The notes beneath the pieces were generated by a model. That model was not told where the DNA came from. It did no database searches and saw only the letters and a program-made list of their open reading frames with translations. Shown in pieces: positions 24,927-39,019 of a stretch of DNA of 64,000 nt. Source of the DNA: Selaginella moellendorffii (Eukaryota; Plantae; Lycopodiophyta); NCBI RefSeq assembly GCF_000143415.4, contig NW_003314308.1:558001-622000 (forward strand), read 5' to 3'. Both the position numbers and the translations under genes were made by a program. Every line of letters starts with the position of its first letter. The first letter of the stretch is position 1.

Positions 24927-27900
24927 ATGTTTTTTGGGAGGAACAGTTTCTTATCGTCCCAGGAGGAACAGCCACGAACAGAGAATGGAGAGCGAATTGG
25001 TCACGGGCCCTCTCGATCAAGCACAGGGAGCCGGTCGGATGGATCGGCACATCTAGACGTGTCCGACCCTTCGTTCGAATCTTTCAGGGAGTTAGTTTCT
25101 GGAAGCGCTCTCCAGAGCGAAGTTTTCGGAGCTCCAGGATCCATGCAGAGTGAGAATGCTCCGGCCACAGCTCGCTCTCGGCTTTTCTCGGTGATTTCTT
25201 CCAAAGGACTACAAGCTCACGATCGCCATCCTTCTTCTTCCTCGGGTGCTGGTGGTCCTCCTCCAGCAGCTCGCACTGATGCAAGGAAGGAAAGAGTAGT
25301 ATACGTCGACAATCCTGGCAGGACTAATGAAAACTTCGAGTTCTCCGGGAACAAGGTCCGCACCAGCAAATATACGCTTATCTCGTTCCTTCCCAGGAAT
25401 CTGTTTGAGCAGTTTCATCGGGTTGCCTACATCTACTTTCTCCTGATAGTGATACTCAACCAGATTCCTCAGCTCGCGGTTTTTGGGAGGTTGGCTTCGC
25501 TGTTTCCTCTCCTCTTCGTGCTGGTTGTGACGGCTATCAAGGACGGTTACGAGGACTGGGGTCGTCACAGGTCGGACAGGGAAGAAAACAACAGGCTGTC
25601 TTGGGTGTTCCAGAATGGCCGGTTTGAGCCAAAGAGGTGGAAGAAAATTGAAGCCGGGGAAGTAGTGAAGATTTTCCAGGACGAGTCCATTCCGTGTGAT
25701 ATAGTTTTACTGGGAACGAGCGATGCAAACGGAGTAGCTTACGTCCAGACCATCAATTTAGACGGAGAGACGAACTTAAAGACGAGATATGCGCGGCAGG
25801 AGAGTGCAAGCAAGCATCCGGGCCTGGCTCCCATCACCGGCAAAGTCGTCTGCGAGCCTCCAAACAGGAATATCTACGACTTTGTGGCGTACTTGGAGAT
25901 CGATGACACTCAAGCTCCGCTCGGGCCAAACAACATCATACTCCGCGGGTGTGTGCTCAAAAACACCGCATGGATCGTGGGAGTTGTGGTTTATGCGGGA
26001 AAGGAGACGAAGGCAATGCTCAACAGCTCTGGTGCGCAGTCCAAACGAAGCAGGCTGGAGCAGCATATGAACAAGGAAACACTGTGGCTCTCGTTTTTCT
26101 TGCTGATCATCTGTATTGCCGGCGGTGTTGGGATGGGAAAATGGGTTCACGATCACGACAGCGATCTAAACAACTTTCCTTACTACAAGAAGCGTGACAC
26201 AGCGGACAAGAAGTTCATGTATTATGGACCTTTAGGAGAGGGGGTGTTTGCTTTTCTCAGCTTCATCATCATGTTCCAGATCATGATCCCGATTTCCTTG
26301 TACATCTCCATGGAGCTTGTTCGTCTCGGCCAGAGTTACTTCATGGTGAGAGACGTTGAGATGTTTCACGCGCCGTCAAACTCGAGACTCCAGTGCCGAG
26401 CTCTAAACATCAACGAAGACTTGGGACAGGTGAAATACATATTCTCAGATAAAACTGGCACACTAACCGAGAATAAGATGGAATTCCACTCAGCCAGCAT
26501 TGGAGGGGTTGATTATAGCAACGTTCTTGCAGCTAAAATTTCTGGTACTTCTGATTCCTCGGATGGCATGCAAGTCGAAGGTAACTCTTTTTTCTGTTTA
26601 AGGTATTTGTTTCATGTTTATGATCGTTTCTATGTTTGTGTTGTAGGTAGCCATCTCAAGCCTGGCGTTCGTCTTGACCCCAACTTATTAGAACTTCTTC
26701 AAACGGAGGTCACGTCCTCGGAAGCAACTTTTGTTCACCGTTACATGCTGGTGCTTGCGGCCTGCAATACAGTGGTTCCGACTCGCCACAGTGGACCGCT
26801 GCAATATCAGGCTGAATCTCCAGACGAGCAGGCTTTAGTTTTTGCGGCGTCTGCTTACGGCTATACACTTTTAGACCGAACTACTTCAACGATAGTACTG
26901 GATGTTCTTGGAGAGCAGAAAAGGTGACAAGTCTTCGTGCTGAAATGTTTGCTCTAACACTCAGTTACGTGGAACCATTTGCTGCAGCTACAAAATTGTA
27001 GGAATTCACGAGTTCGACAGTGTACGCAAGCGCATGTCGATCGTTGTGGAGTGCCCCGATAACACGTACAAGCTGCTAGTGAAAGGAGCGGACACAGCAG
27101 TGATGGATATCATTGCCAGGCCATCCGAGCAAGTAGAGTCAGGCTCAGGTTCCCTTGCAGACGGTCATTTGCAAGCAGGGGTGCTGTTTGCAACACAGAG
27201 GCACTTGGACTTCTATTCTACGCAAGGATTGCGCACTTTGGTCGTTGCTTTCAAGGATTTGGAGCAGCCCGAGTTTGAAGAGTGGCACGAAAAGTACAAG
27301 ATAGCTAGCACGGCACTGGTGGACAGGGTGAAGTTGCTCCGAGAGGCGGCTAGTTTAATAGAAAGAAATCTGGCCTTGCTGGGAGCTACTGCAATTGAGG
27401 ACAGGTTGCAAGATGGAGTACCCGAAACAATCTCGTCCCTGCGAAATTCGGGCATCAAAGTTTGGGTCTTGACAGGAGACAAGCAGGAGACTGCGATTTC
27501 TATTGGCTTTTCTTGCGCTCTTCTCACTCCGGACATGGAAAAAGTAATTGTCAACGCTAACACGAAAGAGCTCTGCGTCGAGAAACTCAAAGCCGCTATC
27601 AGAGAGCATGGGATTGCTGAGACCAAGGACGTGCACATTGGAGAGAAGAACTTGAAGGCTGTTAAAGGTGATTCTACCCGCAAGAAACAACTGGCTCTTA
27701 TTATCGATGGGAACAGTCTCGTGCACGCTCTTTCGCCGGACGTAGAAGAACTCGTAAGTGATATTCTCTTTTTTAAGTTTCTTTTACCTTAAACATTTTC
27801 TCGGTGTGTTTTCTCGCAGCTCTTTGACTTAGCCGTAGCATGCAGAATCGTTATTTGCTGTCGCGTCGCGCCGCTGCAAAAAGCCGGGATTGTCTCGTTG

Positions 27901-29081
27901 ATGAAACGAAGAACAAAGGACATGACTCTCGCTATTGGAGATGGTGAGTGATTTTTTTTCTTTTTGACTTTTGTGGCCTAGAAGTGGTTTTCATTTCCCG
28001 AAGTTGTGCTCAGGAGCCAATGATGTCTCCATGATACAGACAGCAGATGTTGGAATTGGATTGAGTGGCCAGGAAGGTCGGCAAGCAGTCATGGCATCTG
28101 ACTTTGCATTGGGCCAGTTTCGATTCTTGAAACGGCTTCTCCTCGTCCACGGTCACTGGAACTACCAGCGTCTCGCGTATATGGTGCTCTACAACTTTTA
28201 CAGGAATGCCGTGTTCGTGATGATGCTCTTCTGGTAAGCTCACTCTCGTTTTTCTTCTCACTTTTCTTCCTTTATCGTTGACATCTGCCTATAGGTACAT
28301 TTTGCACACAGCCTTCTCCGCACAGACAGCGCTTTTCGACTGGAACTTGATGTTCTACTCGCTGATATACACCTCCGTGCCAACGATCGTCGTCGGGATT
28401 CTAGACAAGGACTTGAGTCACAAAACTCTACTCGGACTTCCTCCACTCTACGGTGTCGGACAGAGAAACGAGAGCTACAACTCGGTGCTCTTCTGGGCGA
28501 CGATGCTGGACACGCTGTGGCAGAGCTTGGTTCTCTTCTACGTACCGTTTTTTACGTTCCAGGGAACGACCATCGATATCTGGGGGATGGGCTGCTTATG
28601 GGCCGCAGCAGTGGTGGTGTTGGTCAACTTACACCTCGCTATGGACGTCCTACACTGGACTTGGATCACTCACGCGGCGATCTGGGGATCCATCGTCGTC
28701 TCCTTTGCGTGTTTCTTCGTGCTGGACGCCTTGACAGACAAAGGATTCATCGCACACTACAGGTACTCACTCACTCTTTAGTTTTCCTTGTTTTGATCTC
28801 TAGTGGTGTTCTTCTCTCGCAGAGTTATGTTTCATATGGCATCGACTGCGGTGTTTTGGCTAAACATCTTACTCGTAATCGTCGTCGCGTTGCTTCCCCG
28901 ATTCTGTGCAAAGGTACTGATGCAAAAGTTTTGGCCGTCTGACCTTCACATTGCTAGGGAGCTCGAGCTAAAAAATCGAGCCGCCATTTCGGAGTTTGTG
29001 AAATCGTCCGCCCCTTCTCCCAGAATGGTGGAGCTCGACGATGTTCCTTACTCTGACAAAGAGAGTAAAGAAGACGAATAG
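24927..29081 (+). CDS. ALA1: P4-type ATPase phospholipid flippase (ALA1-like); start codon approximate
   Basis: [32 protein letters not shown], phosphorylation motif [29 protein letters not shown] and [13 protein letters not shown]. Confidence 0.95.
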
Positions 29082-29188
29082 AAAGGCAACTTTGCATAAA
29101 AATTCTTAGATCTGGACCGTCGGCTCAAAACGAATTTGGACCGTCGGTTTCCTGGCATATTCGTCAGGATTTTTGGGATGAGCCCTAA

Positions 29189-31599
<2,411 letters not shown>

Positions 31600-31727
31600 A
31601 TTGTAAGCTGAATATCCTCTCGAGCAGAATATTCTCTTGCGGCTCTTAAGCAGAATATCCGCCTTTATATCCGTTTATTATCTGCGGCGCAGGTTAGGGT
31701 TTTTGTGTTCTTCCCAGGGTCTTCGCG

Positions 31728-33911
31728 ATGAACGACTACAATGTCGCCGGCATGCCCGCGCGCCCCAAGGCTGCGCAGAACCGGGCCACTGTCCAGCAGC
31801 TCAAACTGGTAAGTCTCGTCTCGCCTCTTCTCTTTGATCGGCTTCTCAGCCCTTTTCTTTCAGATCGGCCAGAGCCATCCCACCGGATTGACTGCGAATC
31901 TTTTGAAGCTCTTCGAGCCGCGGCCTCCTCTCGAGTACAAGCCGCCGCCGGAGAAGCGGAATCTTCCACCGTATCATGGTAAGAAAGGATTGCTCGTGGG
32001 ACTGGTTTCTTAAGCTCTACCAGGTATTTCACAATTTGTCCAACACTTTGCGGAGCCGGGTGATCCGGAGTACAGTCCTCCAATTGTGAAAGCTGAAACT
32101 CCGGTATGACAATCGGAGTCTCTTTTTTCCTTGTTTCTAAACTTGTGATTTTCAGTCTCAAAGACGAGCAAGGATCCATAGCGTTCGTCTGGAGAAGGGG
32201 GCGGAGAAGGCAACTGAGGATCTGGAAAAATGTGAGTCGTCATGGATTCTCATCTTTCGATGCTCATTTTGTTTCTTTCAGATGACCCTCAAACCGATTC
32301 CAACATTGAGGGCGATCCATACAAAACACTATTTGTCGCGAGGATTGTAAGTTTCTTTTCTCCTCTATGTCCTGGCAAGGCTTCATCTTGTCCTTTGTTC
32401 TTTTTTTTTTCTTTCCATAGAGTTACGAGACAACGGAACACAAAATTAAAAGGGAGTTTGAGGCATATGGTCCAATAAAAAGGGTAGGTATCCAACTGTG
32501 GTGGTCAAGGAGCTTACAACTCCTCGACTGTGGTAAGATATCCTGTTGTGAGTTCACTCTTATCCTTACCATTTTCCCGTTTATTTTTCTCATCACATTT
32601 TAGCTGCATCGAAAGCACATACTTGTCTAAGCTGCAGATATGTTTCCATGGCTTTCTTCTACTCCACTGCATGAGTTTTGTTTCTGAAGACTGAGAAGTA
32701 AGTGTGTTCATCAGGTATAAGCCCTTTTCTTCTTTTTTCTTTTACTTCATCGGATTGACAAATATCCAAGACTTGGAGCGCATGTTTGTTTGTTTGCAGA
32801 TTAGCAACACACCGAAATTATCTGGCTAGAACAAGAGTCTAGACAGGCAATCTCAAACCTTTTCCTAGTTTAGAGTCAGCCATGCTAGTTTGCTTTCGCC
32901 CCTGGTAAGAGGGTTTTACTGGTAAGCCAACAAAGTTTGAAACTCGTTACTCTCGACGCGTATCTTATGTCTTTGAAGCTGGGCACGGCGAGTGAGGCTT
33001 AATGCCTTCATGTCTGCCGTGTGGAATAGCGTGCATTTTAATAGTCCGCTTGGTTTGTGCTCTTCAGAGCGCGAGAATCGTCTTACTTAATGCTCTTTTC
33101 GTTCTCCAGGTTCGCCTTGTCCATGACAAGGACAGTAATAAGCCTCGCGGGTATGCTTTCATCGAGTACTTCCATACACGCGACATGAAAGGTACGTGGT
33201 TTCCTTTTGCAAGCTTTGCTGATATGAATTTGTTTGTTCTGCTTGTAGCTGCTTACAAACAAGCCGATGGACGGAAAATTGATAACCGGAGAGTTTTAGT
33301 TGATGTCGAGCGTGGTCGGACGGTGCCGAACTGGAGACCCCGGAGGCTTGGCGGTGGTCTGGGGTCTACTCGTGTCGGTGGCGACGAAGTGAATCAAAAG
33401 TACTCCGGCCGGTATGCTCCTATCTCTTTCGTTTGTGCTCTTGAAAATCCTTTTTTTTTTCCTCAGAGAACCACAAGTAGGGGGCGCTAGAACTGAGGAG
33501 AAGCCCAGGGACGAGAGAAGCCCGGACGAAAGGTTTGTGTTTCCTTTGTGTATAGTTTTGAGCTGTCTAAAAGTTTTTTCATTTTGCAGAGACCGAGAAA
33601 GAGATCGCGATCGAGAGAGAGACCGTGATAGAGATCACAAAGATCGAGACAGGCCGAGAGACCGGGAGAGGCACCGAGAGAGGGACCGAGACCGGGATAG
33701 GGAGCCCCGTGGAGATAGAGAAAGAAGCCGTGGAAGAGAGAGGGACCGAGAAAGAGGAGGCCGCCGAGATCATCACGAACGAGGGGAGCGCGAGAGAGAC
33801 CGAGAGCGTGATAGAGATCGAGAGCGCGATAGAGGCTACGAGCGAGAGAGAGACAAAGATCGCGATAGAAGTGAGAAGTCTCGTTCTAGAGAGCCTATGG
33901 AGATGGACTAG
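31728..33911 (+). CDS. U1-70K: U1 snRNP 70 kDa protein
   Basis: [32 protein letters not shown]1 [30 protein letters not shown] and an RD/RE-rich tail. Confidence 0.96.
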
Positions 33912-34106
33912 AATACGTTTATCTATTTGTCCTTGTATACTTTCTTTCAACGGCTTTAGTTTGATTTACTTGCGAAGATTCTATGAAAGATTCTTTAGGG
34001 TTTATGGGAGGTAATGCTGGTGGTGGAGGATGATCGACCGTGGCGGCAACTGCTTCTCGGCTGGATTATGAGCGATTGAAGCGTAGGAGGTGCCGGATTA
34101 GCTAGG

Positions 34107-37104
34107 ATGATCGTCGCCAGTATCTGGCAGCAGGCAATCTACTACACCGCGAATAATCTCTTGCCGGACGCGGCGTGTGTGCTGAATCGCAAGCGTCAGC
34201 AGTGGCGGAGCGCGAATTTCCAGCGATGGAGCGCCAAATCGAGCGGATTGAGAGCAATCCCGGTGACGGACAAGGCTTCTTGGATAGAGGTACATGAATT
34301 TCTTCTTGCGCTAGAGTCGGATTCACGATAAAGCTTACAGGAGGAGGAGGAAGTCCAGGAATTCTCCCTCGGGCCACTATCGGGCGATCTTGCGGAGATA
34401 GAAGCCTTCTGTCGAATCCAGCGCCTTGCCGAGCAGCTCCACAGGACCGTGATGGAATCTCTACGTCGGTTAGAGAGCGCCGACGAGAACGTTGGTGCTC
34501 GAGGTGTGTTTAGTTCGTCCTTGGAGGAGAAAGTGGTGGCTGGGCTGGGGTGCATTGGAGCTACTCTCCATCAGGGAAGGCTGGACATTCTAGGTGGCTA
34601 CTCGAACGAGGAGGAAGAAAGGCTTCCTCGCCTCGCTCGGTTTCGATCCAAGCTTAGAGGGTGTTGCTCGTCGTTACGTACCTCTCTCCAGTCCTTGTTA
34701 CCGGCGAAAGGAGACCAGAATCTAGCGGTTTACAGGATCTTACACAGGCTGACCAACGTTTGCCTCGACGCTGGGTTTCCTCGTCCCGATGGAGCACCGT
34801 GCTATGGACACATTCCAAACTTCGCGACTGTCAAGCTCCAGAAAGGTGACGAGAATTTGGTGGAGTTTTGGAGGGGTGGGAACATCAATGAGGAAGGCTT
34901 GGAGTGGTTGCTACAGCGGGAGTTTAAGACGATTGTGGATTTGAGAGATGAAGATCCTCAGAACGAACTGGCCGAAGCAGCGCTCATGAAAGCCGAAGCG
35001 TCTGGGAGAATAAGGCGAGTAAGAATTCCCGTGTCAGTGCAGACAGCGCCGACGATGGAACAAGTGCGCGAGTTTGCGGATATCGTCTCGGATGCTGCGA
35101 ATCGGCCGGTTTTCCTGCAAAGCTATGCCGGCGTGGTGAGAGCATCAGCGATGGTATCCAGGTGGCGGGAGTTTGTGCTTCGTGGAGGCTTGGATCGTAA
35201 CTGTAGCGAGCCGATGTGCACAGTCGAAGACATATTTCTGGAGGAGACACCTGACAAAGCCTCTGAAAGCTCCAAGGTTGCAGCCAACATGTTAAGAACA
35301 ACGAGTCCCTTCGAGGCTCAAATGCCGGGGCCGGATGTCTTCTCTCGCATGTCTATGGCAAGATTTTTCAAGAGGAAACGTACGCTGCCAGGCTCCGCCC
35401 GGCGGCAAAGAAGGACTATCTACTCTCGTTTGGATCCAGACGAGAACGCACAAAATGGACGCTTCAATGCCAAGGTTGAGGTGCCTAGCAAACCATCTGG
35501 AGGTAGCACGAATGGACGAGCTGGTGGCCGAGCAAAGGAAGAAGATGATAACGGCGCTGTCCAAGGTGATATGTGCGCTTCGAAAACCGGTGTCGTCAGG
35601 CTCCAGTCGAGGAAGAAGGCCGAGATGTATCTCGTGAGAACAGATGGTTATAGTTGCACCAGGGAGAGAGTGACGGAGTCGACGCTGGCATTCACGCATC
35701 CCAGTACACAACAGCAGATGCTCATGTGGAAGACTGCACCAAAAACGGTTTTGTTGCTAAAGAAGCTGGGAGAGGAGCTCATGGAAGAGGCGAAACAGGT
35801 GAGAGCTTGGTATGTCTCTGGTTACGATGACTTAGTTTTCGTGGTTTCTCTGTGACCAGGTGGCTTCGTTTCTGTACAATCACGAAGGCATGAATGTTAT
35901 GGTTGAACCTGACGTACACGATCGATTTGCCAGATTTCCGGGTTTCGGATTCATCCAGACTTTCTACAATCACGATATTGGGTGATTTCTTCTCAGACGA
36001 TTTATTATTGTCTGTTTTTTCTGTTTTAGTCTGTTTCTTGGCTAAAATCTTTTTGTTTTTGACTTGGCAGCGAGCTCCATGAAAGAGTTGATTTTGTGGT
36101 GTGCCTCGGTGGAGATGGAGTCATCTTGCATGCATCCAATTTGTTTAGGAGTGCTGTTCCTCCCGTGGTTTCTTTCAATCTTGGCTCCCTCGGATTCTTA
36201 ACTGCTCATCCCGTAAGTGTTCGTTCTTGCTGATTGCAAAGGTTCTAACACAAGCCCATGCTTTTAGTTTGAGGACTTCAAACAAGACTTACGCGCGGTC
36301 ATACACGGAAATAGAATAGAAGGGGTGTATGTTACTTTGCGTATGCGCTTGAGGTGTGAAATCGTCAGAGATGGACAACCGGTTTCAGGGAAGGTCTTTG
36401 AAGTTCTTAATGAAGTTGTCGTGGACAGAGGATCGAATCCTTATCTCTGCAAGATCGAATGTTACGAAAGGAACCGGCTCATCACAAAGGTAAGCTTTTT
36501 TTCCGTGGACAATGGAGGTTTTGTGACAACTCTCTTCACAGGTTCAAGCGGACGGGGTGTTAGTAGCCACACCGACTGGTAGCACAGCTTACTCCACTGC
36601 TGCTGGAGGATCAATGGTTAGTAATAGATTGGTTTGAAAACTTTATCTAACTGGCTTATTCTATGATCTCAGGTTCATCCGAATGTGCCTTGTATGCTGT
36701 TCACGCCCATCTGTCCTCATTCGTTATCGTTTCGTCCAGTGATCCTACCCGACTCTGCTATTCTTGAACTGAAGGTACGCTAACTTTTCTGTTCACTTCT
36801 GGACTTTTGGCGTGGTTCATGCACCCTCGCTTGAGTTTCGTGACGCCCTGAGACTAGCTAGAGCTATGGCACCATTACAGTTTTTACTTTGCAGGTTCCC
36901 AGTGACTCAAGAAGCAATGCTTGGGTCTCGTTTGACGGGAAAAAGAGGCAGCAGCTCACCAAAGGCGATTTGGTGCGAATTCATATGGGCAGGAATCCAA
37001 TGCCTACAGTTAACAAATCCGACCAGACGTCCGATTGGTTTCGGAGCCTAGACAGATGCTTTAACTGGAGTGCTCGTAAAGAACAGATGGCTCTACTTCA
37101 CTGA
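34107..37104 (+). CDS. NADK2: Chloroplast NAD kinase 2 (ending in terminal exon A, 36895-37104)
   Basis: [16 protein letters not shown], a PTP-like domain (KTIVDLR; QSYAGVVR), [37 protein letters not shown] and [11 protein letters not shown]. Confidence 0.95.
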
Positions 37105-37213
37105 CTAACAGGTTATTCATTGTAGGTTGCCTAAAGATACATGTCTTTCTTGCATGAAGTTTGTGTTTTCATCATCATATTGACGCTTGTTCTAACTGTT
37201 GCTGCTTTCACAG

Positions 37214-37474
37214 GTTCCAGAAGACGCGAGGAGCTCGGCATTTGTTTCTTTCGACGGGAAGCGAAAGCATCCCCTCAAAATGGGTGAATCCATCCGAATC
37301 AGCATGAGCAAGCATCCCATGTCGACGGTAAATAAGCGGGATCAAACAGATGATTGGTTTGCCAGTTTGTCTCGATGCTTTGGCTGGAACCAACGAGCCG
37401 AGCAAAAGTCGATCACAGGTGCACACGCCAGGATTTGTTTTCCCATAAACTAGTGCTCTTCTTTCGCAGGTTAA
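37214..37474 (+). CDS. NADK2: Duplicated alternative terminal exon B of NADK2
   Basis: Acceptor ttcacag|GTTCCA is in the same phase as exon A (ttgcag|GTTCCC). It encodes VPEDARSSAFVSFDGKRKHPL...DWFASLSRCFGWNQRAEQKSITG. It ends either via a 51-bp intron (37419-37469) at TAA 37472-37474, or unspliced at 37453. Confidence 0.8.
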
Positions 37475-38119
37475 CGACGTAGCTAAGTTGGCACTGCTGG
37501 GACATGAAAAAAAGCGTAAACTCCAAATTTAAGTGTTCGCCACCTTCGCCCCGACGATGATGCCGCATTGGTGAAGTAGACCTCCTTGCGGATCAGGCTG
37601 AAGAAAATATGCGCAGCCGGGCGCGGTCGGTACCATGGGCTTACTCATGTTAATAAACCACTAATGATAATTCAACCACTAGAATGATCTTTTCTTGATC
37701 AGGTATATACTTATATATTAAGTTATTGTGATTAAAACATGTCACTAATTTCTATACATATAGAATACAGTTATTAACCACATATCGATATATTCGATCC
37801 AACTTGGATATACATGATAGATTTTAAGAGCTTTTTGAGTTAGTGTAAAATAATTATCTACAAATATGCACTTGAAAATCTTATATAAATATAACTTGTC
37901 TGGCAAATTGGCGATGCAGTTGTTTAAGCATAAGTCTTGATTGCCATAGGTTTGAATCACAAAGCTATTGAAGTCATCTGAAAGAGTTGCCTATAGAGGC
38001 AAGGTTTTGCTTGTTTAAGATTATATACATCACAAAAACAAATTGCCTAATTCCATCATTGTTATTAAATGATAAATTTCATTATCAATCAAACATTAAT
38101 AATTTAGTAAGAAAGGTAA

Positions 38120-38243
38120 GTGGCTGGTACCACCAGACTGAACGTTTGCCGCTGCTAATTTCGTTGAATATCCTCCTAGCATATCGATTCCTGCAACAGC
38201 TCCCTCCCCATTTGTCACGGCTCTTGCCATTTCTTTGACATTG
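38120..38243 (-). pseudogene. Fragment of an MDR-superfamily (enoyl-reductase-like) gene, inverted relative to the piece at 39020
   Basis: Reads NVKEMARAVTNGEGAVAGIDMLGGYSTKLAAANVQSGGT, matching the MDR pattern T.G.G....D..GG.......l..GG. Confidence 0.55.
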
Positions 38244-39019
38244 TTTATGTATTGTTTATATATTTCCTTTTTGTCGCTTGATATTTAGTCAAATTGCAAG
38301 AATATTTGTATTATTTTATTGGAAACACGTGTTGCATACAGCCTAGCTATATTTTAGCATGATAATATTATTACCAATTGTTTTTAATAGAAAAATTATG
38401 TTTATTCATATCCTTCTATTTCTTTGGATTTTTCAAGAGTAGAAAAACTATATTAGATACATTTATAATTATATTTATATTATTTTATTGAAAGTACAGA
38501 CTTATCTTATATAATCTAATGTTAACATGTGAAAACCCGGCAAGAAAAAACATGAATTTGTGGTTTCTAGAGTTTATTATGCACAAAAACATAAATTAAA
38601 TTATATATTGATTTTTATAAATTTAATTTTGTGATTAATATAGGTTTGCTGAAGTTGCTGAATAAACTTTTATTGAAAGTTTCCCAAAAAAGTTTTTAAA
38701 CTTATCAAATGTATCAGGCTATCCAGAATAAATATTGAGTTTCACTTCAAATCATTTGTTATTCAATTGTGTTGGTAACTTTCTTATGTAGCTTGAATTG
38801 TGAAAATTATCTATTGAATTTTGAAATATTGAAAAAAAATTATAATATGAAATACGTATTGTGGCCAGAACAAAATGGCAAAAGCTAGGGCCCTGTAGAA
38901 TTAGACTTTTCCCTAGTAGAAAGATATGGTGATGATTGCTATCAGAAAAAAGCCAATAATAGTTGCAGTTGGGCTAAAAACATGTAAAAATGATCCATAT
39001 AATACATAAATCTTCTATA

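Follow-up and report, generated by a model that had tools for sequence, protein, structure and literature searches.

The 64,000-nucleotide stretch of the Selaginella moellendorffii genome considered here (contig NW_003314308.1; "the window" in what follows) carries on its plus strand, at approximately 34005-37685, a gene for an NADK2-type NAD kinase in which two homologous exons, A and B, lie one after the other at the end of the coding region. In general terms, NADK2 makes the chloroplast NADP+ that is reduced in photosynthesis, and the tuning of its activity is still under study. With its long first coding exon the gene matches at 100% identity a RefSeq protein named "probable NAD kinase 2, chloroplastic isoform X2" (P0008), and this protein and a second RefSeq entry (P0132) are both 100% identical to the gene. 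P0008 contains the Pfam domains PTP-NADK (PF22741), Tc-R-P (PF22785), NAD_kinase (PF01513) and NAD_kinase_C (PF20143). The last two, with the GGDG motif read in the open reading frame 36096-36233, and the long N-terminal extension in which the phosphatase-like PTP-NADK is fused to the kinase, are the marks of NAD kinase (NADK) subfamily II; Arabidopsis AtNADK2 and its plant relatives (family survey: PMC4072752) have the same domain architecture and kinase core. From the RefSeq name and homology, a putative chloroplast location and NAD+ kinase activity can be assigned to the protein. The end of this gene is very probably an old tandem duplicate of the NADK2 tail exon, whose upstream copy (A) is now a cassette bearing a stop, with one gene having two C-termini. 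Its elements are the following.

34108..37474, plus strand: coding span, beginning at the ATG and ending with the stop codon of the B isoform (RefSeq proteins, spliced contigs and the ATG as read)
~34005 to ~37685, plus strand: transcript (spliced contigs)
36673..36774, plus strand: constitutive exon ending in ILELK (Pfam NAD_kinase_C match), whose donor 36774/36775 feeds both alternative junctions
36895..37111, plus strand: exon A, a 217-nucleotide cassette with 69 residues ending in KEQMALLH, the tail of RefSeq isoform X2 (acceptor used in four of four runs, donor in three)
37102-37104, plus strand: TGA stop of exon A, seven nucleotides upstream of its GT donor
37112..37213, plus strand: intron of 102 nucleotides between A and B (joint 37111>37214), retained at times
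37214..37418, plus strand: exon B, of 205 nucleotides, with the tail ending in AEQKSITG, as in RefSeq isoform X1 (joints 36774>37214 and 37418>37470)
37419..37469, plus strand: intron of 51 nucleotides downstream of exon B, removed in four of four runs
37470..37685, plus strand: shared last exon, which finishes a Gly codon and holds the TAA (37472-37474), the 3' untranslated region (3' UTR) and AATAAA (37652-37657), with contigs ending at 37666-37685

The use of these exons can be read from the contigs of four public sequencing runs, from four studies, that were aligned to 33800-38600. The RNA nature of the runs is a guess from the data source; the contigs are devoid of ten GT..AG introns and therefore derive from spliced transcripts. 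All the key junctions are GT..AG. The one leading into A (36774>36895) was found in the four runs, the one skipping A (36774>37214) in three of the four, the one joining A onto B (37111>37214) also in three, and the one removing the 51-nucleotide intron after B (37418>37470) in all of them. No assembled form lacks exon B (a 2969-nucleotide contig of run X2 spans A, B and the last exon), and no form with A alone, i.e., with the joint 37111>37470, was seen in the contigs of the four runs. All the assembled forms share one common last exon and end at 37666-37685, downstream of the AATAAA. The donor of A is sometimes read through into the intron between A and B, as happens in a contig of run X5 (36893-37184) and in one of run X1 that runs over 37201. 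Both the A-included and the A-skipped forms are common, and the mechanism is exon skipping of cassette A, not alternative polyadenylation.

The consequences for the protein would be as follows. When A is skipped, the ILELK exon would be joined to B, and the protein would end in AEQKSITG, with its stop located in the short last exon common to all forms; with A in the mRNA, translation would end within A, in KEQMALLH, and B and the last exon would become 3' UTR. Exon B has, in this way, two roles, since it provides 68 codons plus one nucleotide in the first case and untranslated sequence in the second. Transcripts with A and B together would yield a complete protein owing to the stop in A, and the two tails are mutually exclusive in the protein only, not in the mRNA. 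The initial annotation, based on the sequence, had proposed mutually exclusive last exons chosen by alternative 3' splicing and polyadenylation, and had suggested looking for splicing into 37214. That splicing was found, A and B are each spliced after the ILELK exon, and the notion of one gene with two C-termini stands. The mechanism had to be replaced, given that A is a cassette with its own donor (37111/37112), joined to B, and that a common last exon ends near 37685; exclusivity at the RNA level had to be given up as well, in view of the joint of A onto B. The position 37474 with which that annotation closed the element turned out to be the last base of the TAA of the B isoform, beyond the 51-nucleotide intron.

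The homology of A and B is apparent in their residues as well as in their borders. In a BLASTP comparison 38 of 67 positions are identical (57%) without gaps, with an E value of 2e-29, and the identity of the DNA is 58%; both exons are preceded by a pyrimidine-rich tract and CAG and start with GTTCC, and no convincing alignment was obtained between the introns flanking A and B. As in a tandem exon duplication, the two homologous exons are adjacent (217 and 205 nucleotides), with phase-0 acceptors and phase-1 donors. The ACAG/GT donor stands in the same phase on both of them (217 = 72x3+1; 205 = 68x3+1), so that the donor was probably part of the duplicated unit. When the two donors are aligned, A exceeds B by 12 nucleotides, and the TGA of A sits in these extra bases; without it, the joint inclusion of A and B would shift the frame of B. 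A hidden Markov model (HMM) of both exons detects exactly two copies in the six frames of the window, where no further NADK fragment was found beside A and B.

The S. moellendorffii assembly holds two haplotypes, and for that reason it could be suspected that the second copy is an assembly or annotation artefact, namely a collapsed or misjoined haplotype. This explanation deserves practically no credence, since the DNA of the two exons is so dissimilar, and it is refuted by the single transcript contigs that cross from A into B and by the second haplotype, both haplotype scaffolds carrying both exons. Six members, on two scaffolds (1.46 and 1.39 Mb), make up the 90% cluster of the RefSeq protein, and on each haplotype scaffold isoform X1 ends in AEQKSITG (B) and isoform X2 in KEQMALLH (A). 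When the scaffold of the other haplotype, GL377619.1 (L085), was aligned, both exons were found in it, with a single difference in exon A (37050, CTA>CTG, synonymous) and none in exon B. With the same two exons there, B can no longer be taken for the end of another gene whose complete version survives in the other haplotype.

The great age of the pair is indicated by the codon positions, at which A and B are 70%, 70% and 33% identical (first, second and third, respectively), the last value meaning that synonymous divergence (dS) is saturated. The rates reported here are maximum-likelihood (ML) values and codon-position identities, since the NG86, LWL85 and YN00 methods are unusable at saturated synonymous sites. 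Nonsynonymous divergence (dN) between A and B is 0.33-0.36, with an ML omega (dN/dS) of 0.07. Against the single terminal exon of the moss contig L001, A has an omega of 0.06 and B one of 0.006, and dN against the moss exon is 0.23-0.25 and 0.15-0.19, respectively, B being slightly more conservative. The six residues that are invariant in this segment of a 54-sequence family alignment (R6, F13, D14, G15, R61 and Q64) are kept in both exons, and the departures at nearly invariant sites are conservative (W10F and R18K in B; S32G and N59S in A). Saturated dS, low dN and the retention of every invariant residue together point to an old duplication with both copies under constraint. The upstream kinase domain of the Selaginella protein is 81-86% identical to the NADK2 of moss, fern, liverwort, Closterium, Spirogloea and seed plants, and in the comparison with the same sequences the A segment reaches 66-76% and the B segment 63-72%; lineages with a single copy conserve their terminal exon to the same degree as the rest (79-90%). 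The terminal branch lengths (0.64 for A, 0.63 for B and 0.10 for the upstream domain) suggest that A and B evolved approximately six times faster than the remaining kinase domain. Most of what had been noticed in advance about the pair is thereby borne out: two tandem, diverged and intact tail exons with 38 shared residues (a hand count that was right), same-phase polypyrimidine-CAG acceptors in flanking DNA that does not align convincingly, a family core kept in both copies, and an old duplication. Two further checks proposed at that time gave a dN/dS of A versus B far below 1 and, in the other haplotype, the same two exons with no intact second gene.

Nonetheless, a number of observations weigh against the explanation preferred here, i.e., an old duplicate that provides one enzyme with two alternative tails, and some of them suit a different one, in which the inclusion of A is mainly an unproductive regulatory splice: A would be a poison exon by which a fraction of the NADK2 mRNA is diverted to decay and the enzyme level is tuned, and only the B enzyme would matter. 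The stop of A lies upstream of two exon junctions, at a distance of seven nucleotides from the first and of 212 from the second (37418/37470). According to the usual plant rule, nonsense-mediated decay applies to a stop located more than ~50 nucleotides upstream of a later exon junction, which makes the A-included mRNA a candidate for this pathway. There is, moreover, a second truncating splice variant in the same gene, due to an alternative donor of an upstream exon at 36009 (instead of 35981), which adds 28 nucleotides (35982-36009) and an in-frame TGA (35983-35985) that cuts the protein before GGDG. This variant is the only form assembled in run X2, where the inclusion form is likewise the only one assembled; that run therefore pairs A inclusion with the truncating donor, and some A transcripts may be unproductive. 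The slightly more conservative character of B against the moss exon is also in line with a B enzyme that matters more. Besides, charge and hydropathy are similar in the A and B tails, with no obvious functional difference in the sequence, and the support for either isoform is confined to the level of transcript and sequence. The depths of the contigs with the inclusion and the skipping junction (16 vs 32, 11 vs 29 and 118 vs 191) are of the same order, contig depth not being a valid measure of abundance or of isoform ratio.

However, a poison exon needs just a stop, and A keeps a frame of 69 codons and every invariant residue in spite of the saturated synonymous divergence. Coding content that is not conserved would be expected of such an exon, and the dN/dS of A is far below 1. 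The A-included contigs, found in the four runs with a depth comparable to that of the skipped form, fit efficient decay poorly, and the kinase domain with the A tail is predicted to fold as confidently as that with the B tail. It is the conservation of the whole coding frame of A that makes the poison exon quite an improbable account of the locus.

What the exon swap would change in the enzyme can be judged from AlphaFold models of the kinase domain of the database proteins P0132 (B tail) and P0008 (A tail), together with an alignment of 54 rows. The mean predicted local distance difference test (pLDDT) values are 87.6 for the B tail and 89.1 for the A tail, and in both models the swapped segment consists of four strands (~265-295), a helix (300-312) and a short tail, so that the predicted fold is the same for the two. 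The nearest solved relative is human NADK (E 1e-83), in which the swapped segment corresponds to residues ~370-436. In the structure of the human enzyme by cryogenic electron microscopy, the helix at the C-terminus (413-424) hinges against the N-domain, W427 lies buried between two subunits, N428 forms a bond with a second subunit, R430 points into the active site, and the deletion of the C-terminal region containing these elements abolishes the activity (PMC11759006). The alignment places the human helix and the three residues at exon positions 44-61; both exons retain W58 and R61, and N59 is kept in B and replaced by Ser in A. The 29 differences between A and B are distributed over the tail (7 in 11 residues), the helix (3 in 13) and the strands and loops (19 in 43). 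The swapped helix and tail would thus match the elements of human NADK that are anchored over the active site of the neighbouring subunit, that is, those required for activity and in contact with the second subunit, and by homology the isoforms would differ in a portion that forms an integral part of the fold and lies near the site of catalysis. We infer that both isoforms would be translated into active enzyme and may differ in activity, regulation or subunit contacts, in agreement with the earlier suggestion of a possible effect of the tails on kinetics or oligomer contacts, which is reasonable on the same grounds. Peroxisomal targeting was considered and dropped, as neither tail ends in a tripeptide resembling the type 1 peroxisomal targeting signal (PTS1). 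Human NADK itself is regulated through its disordered N- and C-tails and phosphorylation, not through alternative exons. A natural enzyme pair is thereby offered for testing the role of the C-terminal tail, with a plant swapping by splicing the piece that is essential in human NADK.

Where the second exon came from is a matter apart from its age. Compared with other plant-type NADK2 loci, the Selaginella gene is different in that the terminal exon is single-copy in all the 84 other loci examined, which comprise 80 metagenome contigs (from seed plants, a moss and algae), three moss loci (L001-L003) and one moss transcript contig (L004), none of them from a lycophyte. A sensitive HMM search of the moss loci revealed no relic of a second exon. 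Word-index protein searches, subject to length and word limits, gave seven matches for the exon profile and five for the B region of P0132, with moss and Closterium among them and no lycophyte, and a profile search of the whole library (150 representatives clustered at 50%) gave no second tail from Selaginella or any other lycophyte. P0138, the top match of the profile search, was rejected, being an unrelated fusion of two NAD kinases whose scores had been summed; in this protein of 832 residues two full NAD kinase units follow each other, and their terminal segments lie at 310-368 and 762-829. One of the moss loci (L003:5001-7991, from the 254-kb contig ctg131684 of ENA ERZ25073694) is peculiar on its own account, since it encodes a moss-type NADK2 of 996 residues in one uninterrupted frame, an intronless copy of a gene that elsewhere has many introns.

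Exon B resembles the exon of mosses. At the positions where Physcomitrium departs from the consensus of charophytes, liverwort, fern and seed plants, B shares 10 of 20 states and A 2 of 20, and the moss exon carries the GES...SLSRCFGWNQR.EQ.SI states of B. In an ML tree of 40 rows B groups with the mosses (98/92) and A is their sister (92/77); forcing A and B as sisters costs 6.7 log-likelihood units, with a borderline p of 0.0535 in the approximately unbiased (AU) test, which was chosen after seeing the tree. The tree of the upstream kinase domain is unresolved as to whether the gene as a whole is moss-like. The single-copy terminal exon of mosses is accelerated too, with 64-70% identity to other plants vs 80-87% for the upstream kinase domain (L001, L004, P0133, P0134 and P0160). 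The RCFGW motif also recurs in unrelated algae, and therefore part of the resemblance between B and the moss exon is homoplasy.

These data bear on a different origin for the same two-tailed gene, in which the pair would be the remnant of a tandem duplicate of the whole gene with its upstream part deleted, or else would contain the captured tail exon of an old paralogue, as proposed for KRAS 4A. The grouping of B with the moss exons apart from A, the moss states that it shares, the AU value, and the fact that B has its own downstream mini-exon and 3' end speak for such an origin, which is nevertheless unlikely: a sister relationship of A and B is not rejected in the AU test, the hypothesis is post hoc and RCFGW recurs in unrelated algae; the spacing of A and B is just 102 nucleotides, with no other NADK fragment in the window; the same acceptor phase and the same-phase ACAG/GT donors are what is expected from copying one unit with its donor; and the structure is the same in the other haplotype. 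The explanation preferred for the origin remains that the tail-coding exon of NADK2 would have been duplicated in tandem long ago, and its upstream copy would have turned into a cassette exon with its own stop. The likeness of B to the moss exon would then be either a convergence on the same solution for helix and tail or the trace of an older exon or gene pair followed by differential loss, the latter being doubtful. Stated in full, and as tentatively, this would mean that two versions of the tail exon, or two NADK2 paralogues, predate the split of mosses and lycophytes, and that mosses kept the B type, most land plants the canonical type nearer to A, and Selaginella both. If that were true, it would make this an alternatively spliced pair of homologous exons approximately 450 million years old in plants, and it would connect the odd moss tail with a functional variant of the helix and tail by which the active site is closed.

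The closest known parallel to this layout is found in KRAS, in which an upstream cassette exon, 4A, carries its own stop, in such a way that its inclusion turns the downstream homologue into 3' UTR and its skipping lets the downstream exon code for the C-terminus. Like that gene, the Selaginella NADK2 has a stop-bearing cassette upstream of a homologous terminal coding exon, included or skipped, and the downstream homologue is kept as 3' UTR upon inclusion, as seen in the contig of run X2 that spans both. Homology and great age have also been described for the KRAS exon pair (PMC9882654). Unlike KRAS, which swaps a flexible membrane-targeting tail, NADK2, which belongs to a different protein family, swaps an integral part of its catalytic fold; and KRAS 4A has been proposed to derive from the paralogue NRAS, while the origin of the NADK2 pair is left between the readings given above. 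The pair also shares with tandem mutually exclusive exons, in the terms of a 2002 study as cited in PMC9882654, the adjacency, homology, similar length, same phase, purifying selection and use of one or the other in the protein. It departs from them, in the strict sense, in that transcripts with A and B together are common and the exclusion is not enforced in the RNA.

Old tandem exon duplicates that are alternatively spliced are much better documented in animals than in plants, and the present gene provides a well-documented plant case of one that has been selectively kept. Its practical weight is modest, considering that the isoforms are already in RefSeq, that the type of event is well known and that the functional difference is only inferred. 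The initial annotation had not known of this arrangement for NADK2, which holds in part: RefSeq lists the isoforms X1 and X2 on both haplotypes, and no paper on the exon duplication was found. In the literature search, no description of an exon duplication in this gene was found, and for alternative splicing of NADK2 only the unrelated mammalian mitochondrial NADK2 turned up. The plant NADK family survey of 2014 lists Selaginella genes, and its passages on exons, isoforms, Selaginella and alternative splicing make no mention of a duplicated exon or of alternative tails (PMC4072752). As far as was found, then, the two isoforms were already known as RefSeq predictions, and their description as an exon duplication is apparently new.

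Some other features of the region can be mentioned. Upstream of the gene, at 26900-34000 of the window and on the plus strand, the neighbours resemble a P-type ATPase gene, a methionyl-tRNA synthetase gene and an RD/RE-rich gene of the U1-70K type, the last of which has contigs at 33800-33968 with a much higher depth. The first coding intron of NADK2 (34290-34344) has a tandem acceptor, at 34341 or 34344 (51 or 54 nucleotides skipped), by which one Glu is gained or lost in a Glu run, and run X1 takes one of the two while the other three runs take the other. The two haplotypes differ by 0-2.8% over the NADK2 gene, by 9% across the last exon and the 3' UTR, and by 20%, with many indels, just downstream (37470-38300 region), and a contig of run X12 shows dense changes and indels at 37616-37641, within the stretch of greatest difference between haplotypes.

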